A stretch of 64,000 nt of DNA, taken from the IMG/VR virus record IMGVR_UViG_3300045921_000730, positions 124,001 through 188,000 of that record; one strand, written 5' to 3'. Below are positions 5,048-14,291 of the stretch, piece after piece; position 1 is the first letter of the stretch; every line of letters starts with the position of its first letter. The translations under genes and the position numbers were made by a program. Below the pieces are notes generated by a model, which ran no database searches, was not told where the DNA came from, and saw only the letters and a program-made list of their open reading frames with translations.

Positions 5048-6106
5048 ATGAAAAAACAATTGAAAAAAGCAGCCTGCTTTACTGATATACACTGGGGCGC
5101 AAAAACAAATTCCGAACTTCACAATCAAGATTGTTTAAATTTTATTGAATGGTTTTGTGCACAAGTAAAAAAAGACAAAGAAATTGACCACATATGTTTT
5201 TTAGGCGATTGGTTTGAAAACCGATCTGCAATTAATGTTTCAACAATTAATTATTCGTATAGAGGCGCCAAGCTTCTCAACGAATTAAACTTACCAATAT
5301 TTTTTGTTGTTGGTAATCACGATTTGTACCATCGACATACGAGAGAAATTCATTCAGTTGTCAATTTTAAAGAATTTACAAATTTCAAAATAATCGACGA
5401 TCCAATAATAATTCCCGAAATTGGAGATGGTGGTGCTGTTTTTTCACCATACCTTTTCCATGAAGAGTATCCCCAATTAACAAAACTTTTAAATTATAAA
5501 ACATGGTGGGGCCACTTTGAATTCAAGGGATTCGTAGTGACAGGCTACAATATTATTTTACCGACAGGTCCCGACCCTAAAGACTACCTAGGTCCAAAAA
5601 GAATATTTTCGGGTCATTTTCACAAAAGACAAGAAGAACTTCATGTGCAATATATAGGAAACGTTTTTCCAACAACGTTTGGTGATGCTAATGATGTAAA
5701 TCGTGGTATGATGATTTATGACCACGAAACTGATAAAGTCCAATATAAAAATTGGGAAAATTGTCCAAAATATTTAAAATTTAAATTATCTGACATACTT
5801 GACAAGTCTGTGAAATTTTACGAAAATGCTAGAGTAAAGTGTGTCGCTGATATACCAATCTCTTTTGAAGACAGCACGCATTTGCGACAAACATTTTTAA
5901 AAAAATATAAACTACGAGAATTTACAATGGAAGAGAGCTACGAAATTAAAGCAGCGTTGACAGAAACGGAAACGTTTATTGATATTTCAAACTCAACAAC
6001 ACTCGATAGCGTTGACAATCTCGTTATTGAAATGTTGAAAGATATTAAAAGTGAACATATTAATAACGATATCTTAATCGAAGAATACAGAAAAATAAAA
6101 GTATAA
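5048..6106 (+). CDS. gp47: Recombination endonuclease subunit (gp47/SbcD/Mre11 metallophosphoesterase)
   Basis: Motifs DIHWG, GDWF, GNHD, GHFE, SGHFH. Confidence 0.92.
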   Translation: MKKQLKKAACFTDIHWGAKTNSELHNQDCLNFIEWFCAQVKKDKEIDHICFLGDWFENRSAINVSTINYSYRGAKLLNELNLPIFFVVGNHDLYHRHTREIHSVVNFKEFTNFKIIDDPIIIPEIGDGGAVFSPYLFHEEYPQLTKLLNYKTWWGHFEFKGFVVTGYNIILPTGPDPKDYLGPKRIFSGHFHKRQEELHVQYIGNVFPTTFGDANDVNRGMMIYDHETDKVQYKNWENCPKYLKFKLSDILDKSVKFYENARVKCVADIPISFEDSTHLRQTFLKKYKLREFTMEESYEIKAALTETETFIDISNSTTLDSVDNLVIEMLKDIKSEHINNDILIEEYRKIKV

Positions 6107-6108
6107 CT

Positions 6109-7893
6109 ATGTTAATTACATTCCATTCTGTTTCACTTAAAAATTTCTTATCATATGGCAATGCTCCAACAACTTTCTTATTGGAAAGACCAGGAACAAC
6201 ACTAATTGTTGGTGAAGACCTTGATAACACAACAAATGGTTACGGAACAAACGGAACAGGCAAATCAAGTATCATTAATGCAATCACATACTGTCTTTAT
6301 GATAAACCTGTTTCAAACATTTCTAAAGACAATCTTGTAAACAACGTCAACAAAAAAAATATGGAAGTTGTTGTTGAATTTACTAACAACGCTGGTGTTA
6401 AATATCTTGTTAAACGAACAAGAAAAACAAAAGCTGGTGCAGCCGGAAATGGAGTATATCTTTATGAAAATGGAAAAGATATTACTTTAGATAGTGTTGC
6501 TGCCACAAACACAAAGATTGAAGAAATTATTGGTGTTCCATATGAACTTTTTGTACGTATCGTTGTTTTTTCTGCATCACATATTCCGTTTTTAGATCTA
6601 CCCACAAAATCTCACTATTCAGCAAACCAAACGGATATTATTGAAGAACTTTTCGGTCTAACAGAACTTTCAAAAAAAGCAGCAGCACTAAAAGAAACAA
6701 TTAAAGAAACCGAAAACAAGCTAACGTCTCAAAAAACAAAACTTGAACTACTTGAAAAAGAACACATACGTCATCAACAACAAATTAATTCTGCTAAAGC
6801 CAGAGTTGACGATTGGAATGAAAAAACAGCAAAAACAATTAAAGAGTTACGTTTACAATTAAAACGTATCGAATGTGTTAATTTCGAAGAACAAAAAACG
6901 TTTCATGAAACGCTACGTGCTCTCAACGAAAAAATATCGGAAAAGCTTGATGAAAAAACAAACATTGAAAAACAAATTAAACAAACTTCACTTTCTATCA
7001 AAAAAAATCAACACGAAATATCTCATTTAAAAGATGATAGGTGTCCGTATTGTAAACAGTCATATGCTGATGCAAAACATAAAATGGTTGAATGTGAACG
7101 AAACAATGAACAACTAACCCAAATACTAGAAACTCAACTAGCAACACTTAACAACTGTGATAAAAGTCTTGAGGAACTCATAAAGCGTCAGAAAGAAATT
7201 TCTAAAAAAATAGAAGTTGATGATATTGAAGAACTCATTAGTATTAAAAATAAATCGTCACAGATTGCATCAAAAATTCATGACTTACTCAATGCAACTA
7301 ATCCGTTTATTGAACCATATCAAGAATTATTAGAGACAAAACTTGAAGAAATCAACTACGAAGAAGTAAATTCAACCACAAAACTTATAGAACATCAAAC
7401 ATTTTTGTTAAAACTTTTGACAAAAAAAGATAGTTTTGTTAGAAAAGCATTGTTAAATAAAAATATTCCGTATTTAAATTCACGCTTGCAATATTATTTA
7501 ACACTTCTCGGTCTTCATCACAAAGTTGAATTTACACATGAAATGACAGCAAAGATTTCTCAATTGGGGAAAGAATTAGATTTTGGTAACTTATCTGCAG
7601 GCCAACGCGCAAGAGTAAATCTTGCACTTTCTCTCTCATTTAGAGACGTTTTACAGAGTCTACATACGAAAATTAACATTTGTATGTTTGACGAAGTTTT
7701 AGATGTCGGTCTTGATGCAGTTGGTGTACAGGATGCAGCAAGACTATTAAAACGTATCTCAAGAGACGAAAAACTTTCATTGTTTATTATCTCTCACAGA
7801 GATGAAATTGAGGGCGTGTTTGACTCAAAACTAACAATCCAGTTAAGTAAAGGATTTTCCTACATAAAAGAAAGTCAACTACTAGACGTCTAA
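6109..7893 (+). CDS. gp46: Recombination ATPase subunit (gp46/SbcC/Rad50)
   Basis: Walker A NGTGKS, coiled coil with CPYC zinc hook, LSAGQ signature, Walker B FDEV, ISH. Confidence 0.93.
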   Translation: MLITFHSVSLKNFLSYGNAPTTFLLERPGTTLIVGEDLDNTTNGYGTNGTGKSSIINAITYCLYDKPVSNISKDNLVNNVNKKNMEVVVEFTNNAGVKYLVKRTRKTKAGAAGNGVYLYENGKDITLDSVAATNTKIEEIIGVPYELFVRIVVFSASHIPFLDLPTKSHYSANQTDIIEELFGLTELSKKAAALKETIKETENKLTSQKTKLELLEKEHIRHQQQINSAKARVDDWNEKTAKTIKELRLQLKRIECVNFEEQKTFHETLRALNEKISEKLDEKTNIEKQIKQTSLSIKKNQHEISHLKDDRCPYCKQSYADAKHKMVECERNNEQLTQILETQLATLNNCDKSLEELIKRQKEISKKIEVDDIEELISIKNKSSQIASKIHDLLNATNPFIEPYQELLETKLEEINYEEVNSTTKLIEHQTFLLKLLTKKDSFVRKALLNKNIPYLNSRLQYYLTLLGLHHKVEFTHEMTAKISQLGKELDFGNLSAGQRARVNLALSLSFRDVLQSLHTKINICMFDEVLDVGLDAVGVQDAARLLKRISRDEKLSLFIISHRDEIEGVFDSKLTIQLSKGFSYIKESQLLDV

Positions 7894-7912
7894 AGAACAT
7901 CAGGTTTCCTTG
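7874..7912 (-). repeat. IS200/IS605-right-end-like hairpin remnant (family A, copy 1)
   Basis: Minus strand reads CAAGGAAACCTGATGTTCTTTAGACGTCTAGTAGTTGAC; similar to 12487-12526 and 36006-36045. Confidence 0.55.
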
Positions 7913-7965
7913 CGGGAATTATATGAAAACGGATAAATACAATTTTATCAACGAGAGACACGACA

Positions 7966-8283
7966 ATGAAACTTAATGACATTTACGAAAACATAAAAGA
8001 TGACACCTCTGGTTTGCTCGCTATTGTAAGACCAACAATCTCAAAGCTCCTAGACGCAAAAGAAAAAAGCACCGACCAGGAAAAGTCGGTATTGTTGAGA
8101 AGAATTTCTGCTTTACTTTCCAAGGTTGTTGTAGATGTAATGAATGTTGAAAATCCAGAAGAAGTCAGGGATGTAATCAATCACATTAATGCAGAAATTA
8201 AAAATGTTGGTGTATTAAACATTCCTAACCAAAAACTTAAAGATTTCCAACGAAGACTGGAACAATCTTTTTATACCCTTTAA
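7966..8283 (+). CDS. Hypothetical protein, possible internal head protein
   Basis: 105-aa ORF after GATAAATA (7932-7939); N-terminus MKLNDIYE. Confidence 0.6.
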   Translation: MKLNDIYENIKDDTSGLLAIVRPTISKLLDAKEKSTDQEKSVLLRRISALLSKVVVDVMNVENPEEVRDVINHINAEIKNVGVLNIPNQKLKDFQRRLEQSFYTL

Positions 8284-8322
8284 AATTTTTTTACACCATT
8301 TTTAAATGGATTAAATAGTCCT

Positions 8323-8817
8323 ATGAAATATTTTATAGGGCTTGATCAATCATACAATTCTTTTGGGTGCTGCATTATTGATGAACGGTTCAATTTACTT
8401 CACTACGAAACGTTCGGCTCACCAAAAGACAAGGACATTTTTGAACGCGCGTGGCATCTTACGAGTCACGTGAAGGATATCGTTTTACGATTCCAACCAT
8501 GCTCAATATGCATCGAAGGTCTTGCATTTGGTATGCGTGGCGATGCAACAAGAGATTTAGCAGGATTACAATTTTCTGTTGTCAACATTTTAAGATTTAG
8601 TTATAATCAAAACATAAATGTTATTGCCCCTCTTTCGTTAAAAAAATTTGTAACGAAAAGTGGTAAAGCAACAAAAGAACAAATGGTTGAAGCATTGCCA
8701 GAAAATATTTTAAATAAATTTTTAGAAAAACATAAAAAAACAACTGGTTTATATGATTTATCAGACTCTTATTGGTTATCAAGATATTGTTTAGATAATT
8801 TTAAGGCAAACTGTTGA
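8323..8817 (+). CDS. ruvC: RuvC-like Holliday junction resolvase
   Basis: YFIGLDQS, CIEGLAFG, LKKFVTKSGKATKEQM, DLSDS: RuvC acidic catalytic pattern. Confidence 0.8.
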   Translation: MKYFIGLDQSYNSFGCCIIDERFNLLHYETFGSPKDKDIFERAWHLTSHVKDIVLRFQPCSICIEGLAFGMRGDATRDLAGLQFSVVNILRFSYNQNINVIAPLSLKKFVTKSGKATKEQMVEALPENILNKFLEKHKKTTGLYDLSDSYWLSRYCLDNFKANC

Positions 8818-8847: not shown

Positions 8848-9121
8848 GTTGGTAATACCCTTCTTCCAACCGAGCGACGAACATAGCCAGCAGTATGCTA
8901 CCAAGCGTCGTTAAATAAGTGCTAACTTGGGAGAAGTCATACTTATTTAAAAGAATAAAAAATCTTTTTTTTCTTTTTGGTCTTGTGGGGGAGTTGTAAT
9001 TTTTGGTTTTTCTTTTTACCAACAACAAGAACCCCGAAATAATTAATAATTACAATGTTGTTTGAAAACGAGTGAAGCGAAGTTTTCAAACAACATTCAT
9101 TAAGCACGTACGTGCTTAATG
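8848..9121. other. Non-coding cluster of five inverted repeats between convergent genes
   Basis: 10-bp stem 8911-8950, 16-bp stem 9054-9097, perfect 24-bp palindrome 9098-9121, plus shorter stems at 8848-8870 and 8874-8911. Confidence 0.7.
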
Positions 9122-9129
9122 GACCGAAT

Positions 9130-9318
9130 TCAATAGATCGGATACATTTTTTCTTTTTCCTGTTCGAGCCTCCGTTCAATAAATTCCCCTATTAGGGAAC
9201 GCTCAAATCTAGACATTAAAAGCATATCGTGGTATTGAATAGAACCACGCATAAAATATACCAATTGAATTATTTCATTTAATATTGATTCAGAATCTTT
9301 TTTCATCTGCTGAAACAT
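9130..9318 (-). CDS. gp51-like hub/tail assembly chaperone; probable C-terminal part of a -1 frameshift product
   Basis: EIIQLVYFMRGSIQYHDMLLMSRFER pattern; in the -1 frame relative to the upstream ORF and open from the slippery site. Confidence 0.65.
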   Translation of the reverse strand: MFQQMKKDSESILNEIIQLVYFMRGSIQYHDMLLMSRFERSLIGEFIERRLEQEKEKMYPIY

Positions 9319-9366
9319 GTCCCTTACATCTTTAGGGGAGCCATGTTTCAGCGTTATGTAAAAAAA
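9309..9366 (-). promoter_or_regulatory. Programmed -1 ribosomal frameshift signal
   Basis: T TTT TTT (9366-9360), 7-nt spacer, stem GCTGAAACATG/CATGTTTCAGC (9352-9342 with 9319-9309). Confidence 0.75.
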
Positions 9367-10142
9367 CCTATCGGATTAATCGGTATGTCAACAATTACTT
9401 TTTCATTACAATCGCGACATTGGATTTCACATGTCGGATCAATACCAAAATCTAACAATTGCTCAATACGCTCACGTATGAGAGTAAACGTATTGATTGG
9501 AACTGATTGAAGCCATTCAACAATCATTTGTTTGTCAAAAACACCGTCAACATCATTGATCATGTTAGCATAATTTTCAACTAACTTTTCTTGAACAAGC
9601 GTTGCTGTATTTTGATTTTCAATTGTTAATGATTGATATAACTCAATAATGTCTTTAAATACAATTGGTTTAAGTATTACTTTTTGTCCTTCAGGTGTTG
9701 TTATTGTTGACGTATTTTTAACAATTGTTGGATCAATTTCTTTAGTTTTTTTAATGATTGGCTCAATGGGAATCGAATAAGTATGTTGTTTTGCATTTTC
9801 GCAAGTGTGTTTATGAGTTATTTCAACGGTTGGTCCATATGAAACGAACCTTAAACACGCCATTAAATAATCAATGTCTTTTGATAAGAGATATTCCGGT
9901 TTATTTACTTGTGGTACACAACGTTTAATTACATTAATTACAGCTGTACCATTGATCAATAAATCTGGCGTATTTAAAGCAATTTCATCTATAGCACTCA
10001 TTGGATATACGTGCACTTCGCCATTAATCACGTCATCTGTTAACTCATTATTTTCGTAAAAAATCGCCAAAGACGGTAAACGAAACGTTTGACCGGGCAA
10101 TCTACTTTTTAAATTTTGAACCAACGGATTAAAATTTTCCAT
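9354..10142 (-). CDS. Baseplate hub assembly protein / tail assembly chaperone (T4 gp26-like)
   Basis: AAGGAG SD before ATG 10142 (MENFNPL); LPS..IFY, PMSAIDE, DIDYLM..LR..SYG, HxC and CxxC motifs, ends PIGFFT; divergent from the tape measure gene. Confidence 0.75.
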   Translation of the reverse strand: MENFNPLVQNLKSRLPGQTFRLPSLAIFYENNELTDDVINGEVHVYPMSAIDEIALNTPDLLINGTAVINVIKRCVPQVNKPEYLLSKDIDYLMACLRFVSYGPTVEITHKHTCENAKQHTYSIPIEPIIKKTKEIDPTIVKNTSTITTPEGQKVILKPIVFKDIIELYQSLTIENQNTATLVQEKLVENYANMINDVDGVFDKQMIVEWLQSVPINTFTLIRERIEQLLDFGIDPTCEIQCRDCNEKVIVDIPINPIGFFT

Positions 10143-10218
10143 AAAAATCTCCTTATTGCACAGATATTTATTGATGTCATAAAACCATAAATAACTCAAC
10201 ATATTGGGGAAACTGTAT

Positions 10219-12408
10219 ATGGCTGATGATGTATTAAAAAATATTAGAGAAGTAGATGCAAATCTTCAAATGTTTTCTGATACACTAAAACGTATAGTTG
10301 AAGTGAACAAAACATATGAAGACGTTCAACGTAATTTAAATGAAACCGTCGAAGAAAATGAGCGTTCAATTGACGAGATTTACAAGAAAAAAATATTAAT
10401 TGAAACTTCATATACAAAGAAAAAGTTAGAAGAAATAAAAGCTGTTGAAGGTTTGGTAAAAAGTCAAAAAGAACAATTACGACAACTTGCACTTGAGATC
10501 GCTAAGAAGCAAGAGCTGATTGAAGCAACCGATCAGAATAGCGAACAGCACAAACTTTTGGTTGAACAAATTGAAACATTACGTAATGAATACTCATCTT
10601 TGAATAATAATATTATTCAAAATCAAGGAAAAATTAACCAGAATACGACCGCTTTAGTTAAAAATCAAACCTCCCTTGGTACTTTTGCAACAAAAATTAG
10701 TGATACAGCAAAAGAAACATTTACATTTAAAGCAGGGTTGGCTGGATTGGGCGCTTCATTAAAGGCTTTAAGCAACGAACTTCGTCAAACAACTAAACAA
10801 TATGGCGGGTTTTATGAAGGGCTTAATCAAAGTACATCCAGTACTGGTCAATTTATTGATATTGTCAAACAACTTGGACAAACATATTACGATTCATATG
10901 TAAAATATGGAATAAATCCCGAAACCTTAGCACGGTTAAATCGTGAATATCGACAAATGTCGTTGGTTATTGGTGATACCAATAAAGTTCAACATCTATT
11001 GAACACCACAAACAAAGAAGGTTTAACCTTCCAGCAACAATATTTTCGTTTGACAGGTAACAACGAACAAGCGATGAGTGCTTTGTATGAGCAGCTGAAT
11101 ATGCTAGCTGTTTCAGGCATAAAACCAACGTCAGCAGCATTGCAATCGATGGCAGATACAACAACACGGGTTAGCAAAATAACCGGTATAATGCCAGACC
11201 AATTTAACGAATTGATGAATTCTATAATTGGAACCACCGAATCGATAGGACTCATGCGTGCAATGTCTGAGCAACAGCGAGTAGCTTTCTTAAAGACCAA
11301 TCAAACAATATTAGCTACAAATGTTGCTCTTGGTATGACAAAAGAACAAGCAGCACAAGCTGCAAAAACATTAAATGAAATGGCTGGACAAAAACCCCTT
11401 GATCGTATGCGGCAAGCAGCACGAATGAGAGCCATGGGAGCGGCGTTTGGTGTTGAAGGAGCTGATGTCGCAGCTCAAGCTGTTATAGCAGGTTCTCGAG
11501 CTACAGACGAGCAAAGGCAAGCGTTAGCAGCTTTTTCCAGATCTATGGCAACAACCATGGATCAAATGAGGGGTGCAGGACTTGGTGCTGAAATTGTATC
11601 AACGACAATGATGGAAAAAATGGATCTTGAAAGATATTTTGGTAAAGAAAGTCCATTTTCGACAACACTAGCAATCCCTGTTAAACAAGCTGCCGAAAAC
11701 TTAAGTACAGCTAACGCCGATTTAACAAAAGGTATGGATGCATTCGTAAAAGTAATGAATGCACTTCAATCGCCGATCGGGGCATTGACGGGTGCAATAG
11801 TAGTATTAACAGGAGCTGTGGTTGCTAACACAATGGCACAAACAGGTAAAGCTATTGGAAATATTGGAAAAGGAGTTGGAAGCGCCGTAGGAAACGCTGC
11901 CAAAGGAGCTGTCGGTCTTGCAGCTCGAGGTACCGCACTTGGATTATCAGGTATGGCAGGATATGAATTGGGTGAGTTATTTTATGGATCCGATTTTGGG
12001 TATACTGCTACTCAGAACCTAATCGATTTCTTTACTGGTGGTCCAAAAGCCGATGCTGCAACAGAAGCACGAAAAAATCAAATGATTCAAGAGATGAAAC
12101 AAAGACGTGCGGAATATGTTGCAGGAAGTAAAACACCAAGTACCATGGTAGTTGAACAAACAGAAGAAACAAACAAAAAAATTGAACAACAAAATAATAT
12201 AATCGATCAAAACTTAAATGAAATCAAACAGTCAAATTCATATCTTAAAACAATTTCTGATATGATTGCTGAGCAACTATTATTAACAAGAAAACAAATT
12301 GAATTGTCTGGATTGAGTGAAGAAGAAAGAAGAAAACAAATTAATTCAATGTTAAGAATTAATGAAATTAAAGGAAAATCAGCAAGCTATATTACACCAA
12401 TTCAGTGA
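10219..12408 (+). CDS. Tape measure protein (putative)
   Basis: About 729 aa, helical Ala/Gln-rich, Gly-rich hydrophobic stretch near the C-terminus; next to the chaperone pair; CATAAATA upstream. Confidence 0.65.
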   Translation: MADDVLKNIREVDANLQMFSDTLKRIVEVNKTYEDVQRNLNETVEENERSIDEIYKKKILIETSYTKKKLEEIKAVEGLVKSQKEQLRQLALEIAKKQELIEATDQNSEQHKLLVEQIETLRNEYSSLNNNIIQNQGKINQNTTALVKNQTSLGTFATKISDTAKETFTFKAGLAGLGASLKALSNELRQTTKQYGGFYEGLNQSTSSTGQFIDIVKQLGQTYYDSYVKYGINPETLARLNREYRQMSLVIGDTNKVQHLLNTTNKEGLTFQQQYFRLTGNNEQAMSALYEQLNMLAVSGIKPTSAALQSMADTTTRVSKITGIMPDQFNELMNSIIGTTESIGLMRAMSEQQRVAFLKTNQTILATNVALGMTKEQAAQAAKTLNEMAGQKPLDRMRQAARMRAMGAAFGVEGADVAAQAVIAGSRATDEQRQALAAFSRSMATTMDQMRGAGLGAEIVSTTMMEKMDLERYFGKESPFSTTLAIPVKQAAENLSTANADLTKGMDAFVKVMNALQSPIGALTGAIVVLTGAVVANTMAQTGKAIGNIGKGVGSAVGNAAKGAVGLAARGTALGLSGMAGYELGELFYGSDFGYTATQNLIDFFTGGPKADAATEARKNQMIQEMKQRRAEYVAGSKTPSTMVVEQTEETNKKIEQQNNIIDQNLNEIKQSNSYLKTISDMIAEQLLLTRKQIELSGLSEEERRKQINSMLRINEIKGKSASYITPIQ

Positions 12409-12426: not shown

Positions 12427-12654
12427 TTCTACCCCGTAAAATTAAAGACTTTGTGGTCTCTCCAGACTAAACAACAATAAATAATTCAAGAAACCTTGAT
12501 GTTCTTCAGATGTTAGGATAAATTAAATAAATAAAAAAATCAATTAATAATAACCGTGTTAATTGATTTTAATTAAAACTAAATATTGTAATAATCTGTT
12601 GTAACAAATTCGGCCCAGAAAATTAGTTGTTCTTAAGAACAACTAGCAGTTCAC
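12427..12654. repeat. Cluster of IS200/IS605-end-like remnants (families C, A, B) upstream of the portal gene
   Basis: 12427-12475 resembles 44464-44520; 12487-12526 resembles 36006-36045; 12612-12654 GGCCCAGAAAATTAGTTGTTCTTAAGAACAACTAGCAGTTCAC resembles 36070-36110. Confidence 0.55.
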
Positions 12655-12674
12655 TATTAAGAAATGACCCCAAT

Positions 12675-14291
12675 ATGGCAAAATTAACAAATTATTTTAA
12701 AGTCATCACACCAAGAATCGGTACAACAACAATGACCGATAACCAAAATATTGGTGATCAGGGTGCATATGCTAATTATACGTGGTATCAAAGGCTAATA
12801 CAAGGTTCAGCATCCAGAATAACAAGATATCGCGAATACGATTTAATGGATAACGACGTTGAAGTATCTCGTGCTCTTGACACAATTGCTGAAGAAATGT
12901 GTGGTTCTGATCCACAGCGTGATTTACCCTTGGTTTTAAAATTTGAAAGTGATAAATCAAACGAAAATAATCATGCCATTGTTAACACACTGAAAACTGC
13001 TATGCAGTATTGGTCAGATTTACATGAACTTGACATAAGATTATTTAAAATAGCACGCATGACAATCAAGTATGGTGATTGTTTCTTTTTGCGAAAAAGC
13101 CCTACAAAAAAATGGGAATTCATTCACCCAAGAAACGTTATTGCAGCAATTGTTGATGAAAACGACATGACTAAAGTTCTTGGGTGGCAAGTGAAACAAG
13201 ATATAAAAAAACCAAATTCGCCTTACAGTGCTCCAACAGGTCATTTTGGAAACTATAGCGAATCACAAGTTGATACATATTCAGCCGACGAAATAGTTTG
13301 GTTTTCGTTGAATGATGACATAAGTGAAGCAGCACCTTTCGGTGATTCGATACTTCGTGCTGTATATAGAGCACAAAAACAAAAAGAGTTGCTCGAAGAT
13401 GCTATTATTATCTATCGCATCCAACGAGCACCTGAAAGAAGAGTGTTTTACATTGATGTCGGTAAAATGCCTCCTGCTCGCGTAAAAGCATATTTGGAGC
13501 AAATTAAAAATGATATGCGCCAAAAGAAAGTCCCAACAGCAGGTGGTGGCGTTGAACAAGTCGATTCTGTTTACAATCCCCAATCAATGAATGAAGACTT
13601 TTTCTTTGCTCAAAGACCTGACGGCAAAGGATCACGTGTTGAAGTTTTGCCAGGTGGTCAAGGCCTTGGCGAATTAGCAGACCTTGAGTACTTTCAGTGG
13701 AAAGTGTTTAGAGGGTTAAGAATTCCTCTTTCTTATATGCGGGAAGGTCAAGATAATGCAATTTTCAATGATGGTAAAGTTGGTGTAGCGTACATTCAAG
13801 AATTGCGTTTTGCTTTGTTTATTAAAAGATTGCAACGTCATATTGAAAAAATACTTGATGCAGAATTTAAAAAATATTTACGTAGTGCTGATGTTATAGT
13901 AGACAACTCATTATTTAAAATAACCTTACCAGAACCTGAAAACTTTGGTGTATATAGACAACAAGAACTCAATGCAAATCTATTAGCAACATTAAGCAAT
14001 GCTGATAACGTTGAATATATCTCCAAACGTTTTGCTTTAAGAAAATATGCTGGATTTACAGATGAAGAAATTTTGACTAACGAAACAATGCGTGCAGAAG
14101 AACTTGGTGTCTTGGGCGAACTTACTAAAAAAGATTTGTCAAAGATTTATAATACGGCAAACCAATTAATGCCAGATGTGGGAATGGGCGGAGATATGAT
14201 TGCTGAACCTGGAGGAATTGAACAACCTACAGGCGTTGGAGAGCTTGGTAGTGCACCACCAGAAGCTGAACCTACAACTCCTCTAACATAA
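12675..14291 (+). CDS. gp20: Portal protein
   Basis: LLEDAIIIYRIQRAPERRVFYIDVGKMP, EDFFF, LPGGQ: T4 gp20 signature; likely start ATG 12675. Confidence 0.95.
   Translation: MAKLTNYFKVITPRIGTTTMTDNQNIGDQGAYANYTWYQRLIQGSASRITRYREYDLMDNDVEVSRALDTIAEEMCGSDPQRDLPLVLKFESDKSNENNHAIVNTLKTAMQYWSDLHELDIRLFKIARMTIKYGDCFFLRKSPTKKWEFIHPRNVIAAIVDENDMTKVLGWQVKQDIKKPNSPYSAPTGHFGNYSESQVDTYSADEIVWFSLNDDISEAAPFGDSILRAVYRAQKQKELLEDAIIIYRIQRAPERRVFYIDVGKMPPARVKAYLEQIKNDMRQKKVPTAGGGVEQVDSVYNPQSMNEDFFFAQRPDGKGSRVEVLPGGQGLGELADLEYFQWKVFRGLRIPLSYMREGQDNAIFNDGKVGVAYIQELRFALFIKRLQRHIEKILDAEFKKYLRSADVIVDNSLFKITLPEPENFGVYRQQELNANLLATLSNADNVEYISKRFALRKYAGFTDEEILTNETMRAEELGVLGELTKKDLSKIYNTANQLMPDVGMGGDMIAEPGGIEQPTGVGELGSAPPEAEPTTPLT

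Follow-up and report, generated by a model that had tools for sequence, protein, structure and literature searches.

A predicted -1 frameshift site conserved in the gp26-type tail-hub assembly gene of jumbo myoviruses

Organisation of the gp26-type locus

As a starting point, we considered a stretch of 64,000 nucleotides (hereafter, the window; positions 124,001 to 188,000 of the 244-kb IMG/VR virus record IMGVR_UViG_3300045921_000730) in which a preliminary description, made from the sequence alone, had proposed that two ORFs are fused by a programmed -1 frameshift of the lambda G/GT kind. Every sequence feature of that description was found in the DNA, and the organisation of the locus is as follows:

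9098..9121, minus strand: terminator-like perfect palindrome followed by a T-rich tract, just after the stop of the extension and likely the end of the transcription unit
9130..9360, minus strand: -1-frame extension (76 codons plus stop), forming the C-terminal domain of the predicted 337-aa long product and including a 62-aa ORF at 9130-9318
9309..9352, minus strand: hairpin 7 nt 3' of the heptamer (11-bp outer stem plus inner stem), candidate frameshift stimulator
9354..9356, minus strand: 0-frame stop codon TAA, one codon after the heptamer
9360..9366, minus strand: slippery heptamer U_UUU_UUU (X_XXY_YYZ) in 0-frame register
9354..10142, minus strand: 0-frame CDS of the gp26-type hub assembly protein (262 aa, short product), with the Shine-Dalgarno sequence AAGGAG at 10154-10149
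10219..12408, plus strand: divergently transcribed 729-aa probable tape measure protein (the ORF opens at TTG 10204; the likely start is ATG 10219, with GGGGA at 10206-10210)
12627..14291, plus strand: portal protein (gp20 type; PF07230, E = 8e-95)

The gp26-like ORF starts at ATG 10142 and ends with GGT TTT TTT ACA TAA, so that a run of seven T (9366-9360) lies in the register T_TTT_TTT. After a spacer of 7 nt there is a perfect 11-bp stem (arms 9352-9342 and 9319-9309) with an inner 4+2-bp stem, the minimum free energy of which is -24.8 kcal/mol (z = -4.65; 0 of 200 shuffled sequences fold as well), and the 3' arm of this stem covers the ATG at 9318. The -1 frame is open from 9360 to 9133 (76 codons, stop 9132-9130), giving a predicted fusion of 261 + 76 = 337 aa, as the preliminary description had stated. 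The T run is not an assembly error, since an independent IMG/VR contig has the identical junction and two strain variants from other hot-spring and microbial-mat assemblies, with 14 and 17 substitutions per 1.1 kb, show no insertion or deletion.

The 262-aa protein belongs to PF12322 (T4_baseplate, 34.8 bits against a cut-off of 24.5) and matches phrog_150, baseplate hub (E = 1e-13), whereas the 62-aa ORF has no family match. The closest cultured relatives of the gp26-like protein are jumbo myoviruses at 23-38 % identity, among them RsoM2USA, XacN1, CM1, PA5oct, RaK2, 121Q and Atu_ph07. The phage is a jumbo myovirus of the RaK2/XacN1/RsoM2USA kind and only distantly T4-like, which corrects the preliminary description of a T4-like phage. 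A DNA-level search of the phage collection found no relative. The gene is usually transcribed divergently from a large gene, and the order gp26-like gene, large gene, portal is shown in PA5oct, RaK2 and 121Q. In the window, this large gene product weakly matches phrog_167, tail length tape measure protein (E = 3e-8), and the RaK2 counterpart is annotated as TMP-like and as a virion protein, but BLASTP found no similarity to T4 gp29 or even to the syntenic RaK2 protein; the tape-measure identity, taken as given in the preliminary description, is thus probable but only weakly supported.

Conservation of the slip site and of the -1 frame

We then collected the junction from 25 loci (the window, 16 phage records and 8 metagenome contigs), to which eight more viral contigs added five new distinct sequences; single-protein scans of viral contigs gave only a few extra loci. 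In all 30 distinct loci, at 23-55 % protein identity, the PF12322 ORF carries an invariant Phe-Phe near its end, the codon before it ends in T and the first Phe codon is TTT, so that NNT TTT TTY is always in the same register, although the preceding amino acid varies (G, V, A, S, T, R, H, Y, N, D, F). The 0-frame tail after FF is 1-20 residues long and unconserved (a single residue in 11 of the first 25 loci), the -1 frame stays open for 70-82 codons and the +1 frame closes quickly. Given the codon usage of each gene, the joint probability for the first 25 loci is about 1e-18, a figure that assumes independence and is overstated because the loci share ancestry. Moreover, FF is a conserved protein feature, so part of the T run is explained by coding and only the preceding T and the choice of TTT at the first Phe are extra. 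Still, synonymous sites are saturated at this divergence and even the phages that prefer TTC (XacN1, CM1, RsoM2USA) use TTT here. T4 gp26 is the natural control: it keeps FF but encodes it TTC TTT, has no -1 extension and is followed immediately by gene 25.

The extensions align essentially gap-free from the first codon after the slip in 24 of 25 loci (Phosso has a one-residue insertion and LR756511 aligns with gaps), with examples such as SPKDVRDMFQQ, SPEEIQEVLKE and TPDDIRNVIQE, so that conserved residues precede any start codon. The first ATG lies anywhere from codon 2 to codon 57, PA5oct has no ATG, GTG or TTG in its 73 codons, and an SD-like motif precedes the first ATG in 1 of the 24 loci that have one. 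An exhaustive profile search of 1.84 billion representatives found 354 family members, nearly all of them small called ORFs whose N-termini start at profile positions 1, 3, 15, 19, 26, 33 or 37, which is the signature of gene callers taking the first available start. All three strain substitutions inside the extension fall on third positions of -1-frame codons, and two are synonymous.

Interestingly, four of these representatives (P0232, P0247, P0252 and P0266; 325-342 aa, from metagenomes) carry PF12322 and the extension in a single frame. Their junctions (...NIF-RNKLIP..., ...VTF-RNKLIQ..., ...EEF-KTKIQT... and ...DQFF-NQLVNV...) are colinear with the predicted trans-frame junctions (...FF-RSQLLQ... 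in RaK2 and ...FF-YITLKH... in the window). The DNA was read for two of them: in the 195-kb contig L030 the junction is AAT ATA TTC CGG AAT, with no T run, and so is not a homopolymer error, while L031 keeps TTT TTT. In L030, the fused gene is directly preceded by a second, 305-aa PF12322 gene that lacks the extension.

Across the family, the 60 nt beginning 3 nt after the heptamer are more structured than control windows of the same genes (mean z -1.79 against -0.24; 44 % against 5 % with z < -2; Mann-Whitney p = 3e-5). However, the structures differ between lineages and some relatives (the locus L015 and RaK2) show little or no structure, so that the hairpin put forward in the preliminary description is specific to this lineage. 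Rfam has no family at the site, and no common Shine-Dalgarno-like motif is visible upstream of the heptamer.

Relationship to T4 gp26 and gp51 and to tail assembly chaperones

The preliminary description called the 62-aa ORF gp51-like. As a gene this is incorrect, because T4 gene 51 lies on the opposite strand, divergent from gene 26, and gp51 is mostly a PF12322 paralogue of gp26 (match over residues 1-201, E = 3.9e-52; alignment with gp26, E = 2e-6). gp51 then continues in frame through NPDEIFTF-YQINH...MIPAERGFVLKLIEKDKQ, and precomputed annotation gives gp51 homologues a second domain, PF28602. Comparing the extension profile with the single T4 gp51 sequence gave nothing (probability 0.65 %), and a signal appeared only with family profiles: E = 0.0036 with small profiles and, with 152 against 91 sequences, E = 1.9e-4 (probability 47 %) against whole gp51 and E = 1.3e-5 (probability 80 %) against its C-terminal segment. 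The match always pairs the last ~34 residues of the extension with the extreme C-terminus of gp51, so that this possible homology rests on about 34 columns, although the fused family aligns with gp51 colinearly from end to end (E = 0.001). It is the long frameshift product as a whole that has a gp51-like architecture, even if the gp51 tail is about 40 aa and lacks the long first helix of the extension. T4 has two PF12322 genes, whereas the complete genomes of RaK2, RsoM2USA, XacN1, PA5oct and 121Q have one each, as does the part of the window's genome that was searched. T4 gp26 shares with the window protein the CxxC...CxxC pattern and the terminal FF, and gene 26 is also divergent from the cluster that holds the tape measure gene 29, but it yields a second product by internal initiation (26', annotated in the record).

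The AF2 model of the 262-aa part is confident (pLDDT 91) and looks like two tandem tail-assembly-chaperone-like domains clamped by a Zn-ribbon. Foldseek searches against PDB and Swiss-Prot models gave nothing significant, although their highest-probability hits were the HK97 tail assembly chaperone and Mu-like gp41. Among 48,161 PDB chains, the three best fold matches are HK97 gp13, YqbN and Rbstp2171 (2OB9, 3KLU and 3FGX), which are exactly the three described as phage tail assembly chaperones sharing one core (PMC9603447), and fold matches in BFVD to annotated hub (assembly) proteins reach E = 2e-20. By sequence, all 30 homologues match PF12322 and none hits a Pfam tail-chaperone family at E <= 5. 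The extension, modelled separately, is predicted with confidence to be a small helical domain (pLDDT 88; helices 9-36, 43-47 and 51-69) with no Pfam hit, no solved-structure match by sequence and no informative fold match; in PHROGs, only the unnamed family phrog_18291 is matched, by 7 of 25 members. In line with a chaperone role, although only as indirect evidence from relatives, the gp26-like protein was not detected by mass spectrometry in XacN1 and RaK2 virions (PMC5852040), the PA5oct record lacks the ESI-MS/MS tag on this gene while its neighbours carry it, and T4 gp26 and gp51 are listed as hub assembly chaperones, with gp51 absent from the particle (PMC3004832).

As in lambda G/GT and the conserved -1 frameshift of tail assembly chaperone genes in long-tailed phages (Xu, Hendrix and Duda 2004, cited in PMC9024508), a -1 slip a few codons before the 0-frame stop is predicted to give a short and a C-terminally extended product sharing their N-terminus, from a gene adjacent to the putative tape measure gene. 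By contrast with that system, the protein family is PF12322, the protein is about twice as long, the slippery sequence is different (U_UUU_UUY), the extension is only about 76 aa with no detectable relation to a T domain, and the gene is transcribed divergently from the putative tape measure gene rather than sitting between the tube and tape measure genes.

Decoding of the gene and its implications

We consider it very probable (a probability of about 0.8), on comparative and structural grounds and without experimental evidence such as a junction peptide (here ...VIVDIPINPIGFFYITLK), reporter assay or RNA data for any of these phages, that the gp26-type gene is decoded in two ways. Most ribosomes would read GGU UUU UUU ACA UAA and release the 262-aa short protein, while a fraction would slip back one base on U_UUU_UUU, with both tRNA-Phe re-pairing in the -1 frame, and add 76 residues (YITLKHGSPKDV...) to make the 337-aa long protein; the slip is probably promoted by the hairpin and by the nearby 0-frame stop. 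Both products are inferred, although the tail-chaperone fold is not established, to be non-virion assembly chaperones of the tail hub and tape-measure complex, and the extension would add a second binding function, as in lambda G and GT. The analogy with the G/T pair proposed in the preliminary description gains support, with the corrections given above.

The same long protein would be obtained if RNA polymerase stuttered on the T run and added one U to a fraction of transcripts, and this cannot be excluded without RNA data, as the site is a homopolymer run (T7 here and up to T9 in RsoM2USA and the locus L020) and adding one base gives exactly the -1 register. We nevertheless regard transcriptional slippage as unlikely: about half of the loci have only T6 followed by C, which is probably too short for a bacterial RNA polymerase that seems to need about 8-9 bases, the T before the first Phe codon, required for P-site re-pairing but irrelevant to polymerase stuttering, is always present, the equally long run NNV TTT TTT never occurs, and the enrichment of RNA structure at stimulator spacing is not expected for polymerase slippage.

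Independent translation of the small ORF, as many database records annotate it, could be suggested in the window by an ATG (9318) 36 nt after the 0-frame stop with AAGGGA just upstream, either directly or by termination-reinitiation. This appears very unlikely, as the ATG is buried in the 11-bp stem and the SD-like run is only 2 nt from it, as the conserved residues, variable or absent start codons and ragged called N-termini described above do not fit a separate gene in general, and as the natural fusions show that the two parts work as one chain. An assembly error or a recently frameshifted pseudogene, although homopolymer runs are error-prone and in-frame fused versions exist in other phages, is effectively refuted by the same two-frame layout in 30 of 30 distinct loci from isolates and metagenomes sequenced independently, by the identical junction in a second contig, by the strain variants and by the selection on the nucleotides of the site.

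None of the 16 phage records annotates a joined CDS, the genome papers on XacN1 and PA5oct do not mention a frameshift, and in the literature searched, which did not cover subscription journals, we found no report of a frameshift in gp26-type genes or of gp26/gp51 as relatives of tail assembly chaperones. What is already known is the recoding logic of tail chaperones, and what is new is its apparent use in a different protein family and phage group. Many jumbo-phage records, including those of phages considered for biocontrol or therapy such as PA5oct and the Xanthomonas and Ralstonia phages, appear to mis-annotate as a hypothetical protein what is really the C-terminus of a frameshift product.

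The -1 frameshift in tail assembly chaperone genes is one of the most conserved recoding events in phages, to which T4 and its relatives seem to have stood as the exception. The simplest reading of our results is that these phages need a short and a long form and obtain them by recoding in the jumbo lineages, by tandem paralogues in L030, or by divergent paralogues in T4, in which gene 26 would be the short form and gene 51 the long one with an in-frame C-terminal tail. It is perhaps as likely as not that the PF12322 proteins are the long-missing tail assembly chaperones of T4-type myoviruses, in which case the G/GT rule of a short and an extended chaperone in a set ratio would apply to them too. 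The locus gives a testable model in which gp26 corresponds to G and gp51 to GT.

Genes of the PF12322 family in T4 and in metagenomic phages

The T4 genes 51 and 26 lie at L010:480-1226 and L011:1503-2129, respectively, L010 and L011 being our labels for the T4 loci. T4 gp51 matches PF12322 over residues 1-201 (E = 4e-52), so it is a paralogue of gp26 with an added C-terminal tail, and T4 gene 26 is also annotated with an internal-start product, 26'. A two-gene solution like that of T4 genes 26 and 51 is found in a 195-kb metagenomic phage contig (L030:9084-10978), in which a 305-aa PF12322 gene without the extension is followed in tandem by a 325-aa gene with the extension fused in frame. The natural fusion encoded by a second metagenomic locus (L031:225-1247) keeps CAA TTT TTT AAC at the junction and its -1 frame stops after about 4 codons; a slip there could make a short form from a long gene, the reverse of the logic seen in the window. 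The heptamer lacks the first T. The profile search with the extension also recovered a 1903-aa protein (P0156) that matches positions 1-25 of the extension profile in 17 separate stretches; this is a repetitive protein of unknown meaning and is probably unrelated.

Surroundings of the gp26-like gene in the window

The following features of the window lie around the gp26-like gene and its extension:

5048-8817 (+), neighbouring genes encoding SbcD/SbcC-like (gp47/gp46-type) recombination nuclease subunits and a RuvC-like resolvase
about 9057-9094, a second long palindrome (gttgtttgaaaac...gttttcaaacaac)
9098-9121 (-), a perfect palindrome followed by a T-rich tract, terminator-like
10165-10172 (-), AATAAATA, 23 nt upstream of the gp26-like ATG
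10204-12408 (+), the putative tape measure ORF

The terminator-like palindrome and its T-rich tract lie right after the stop of the extension and are followed by the second long palindrome, possibly a bidirectional terminator between convergent units. Upstream of the gp26-like ATG, the AATAAATA motif matches 7 of 8 bases of what is probably the T4 late-promoter consensus, TATAAATA, a match whose weight in this AT-rich DNA is uncertain. The putative tape measure ORF opens at TTG 10204 but more likely starts at ATG 10219, after GGGGA at 10206-10210; it holds a Gly/Ala-rich hydrophobic stretch around residues 515-581 and shows no pairwise similarity to T4 gp29 or to the syntenic protein of RaK2. 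The neighbourhood formed by the recombination nuclease and resolvase genes is also seen next to the gp26-like gene in RaK2, in 121Q and in several metagenome contigs.

Occurrence of the phage and of the gene pair

The phage occurs in several hot-spring and microbial-mat metagenomes from different studies and, over window positions 9100-10200, co-existing strain variants differ from it by about 1.3-1.5 %. Among the BFVD entries for Leptospira phage LE4, a hub-like 290-aa protein and an extension-like 71-aa protein have adjacent accessions (A0A343LED6 / A0A343LED7), which suggests that the same pair, and perhaps the frameshift, exists well outside the jumbo-phage group.
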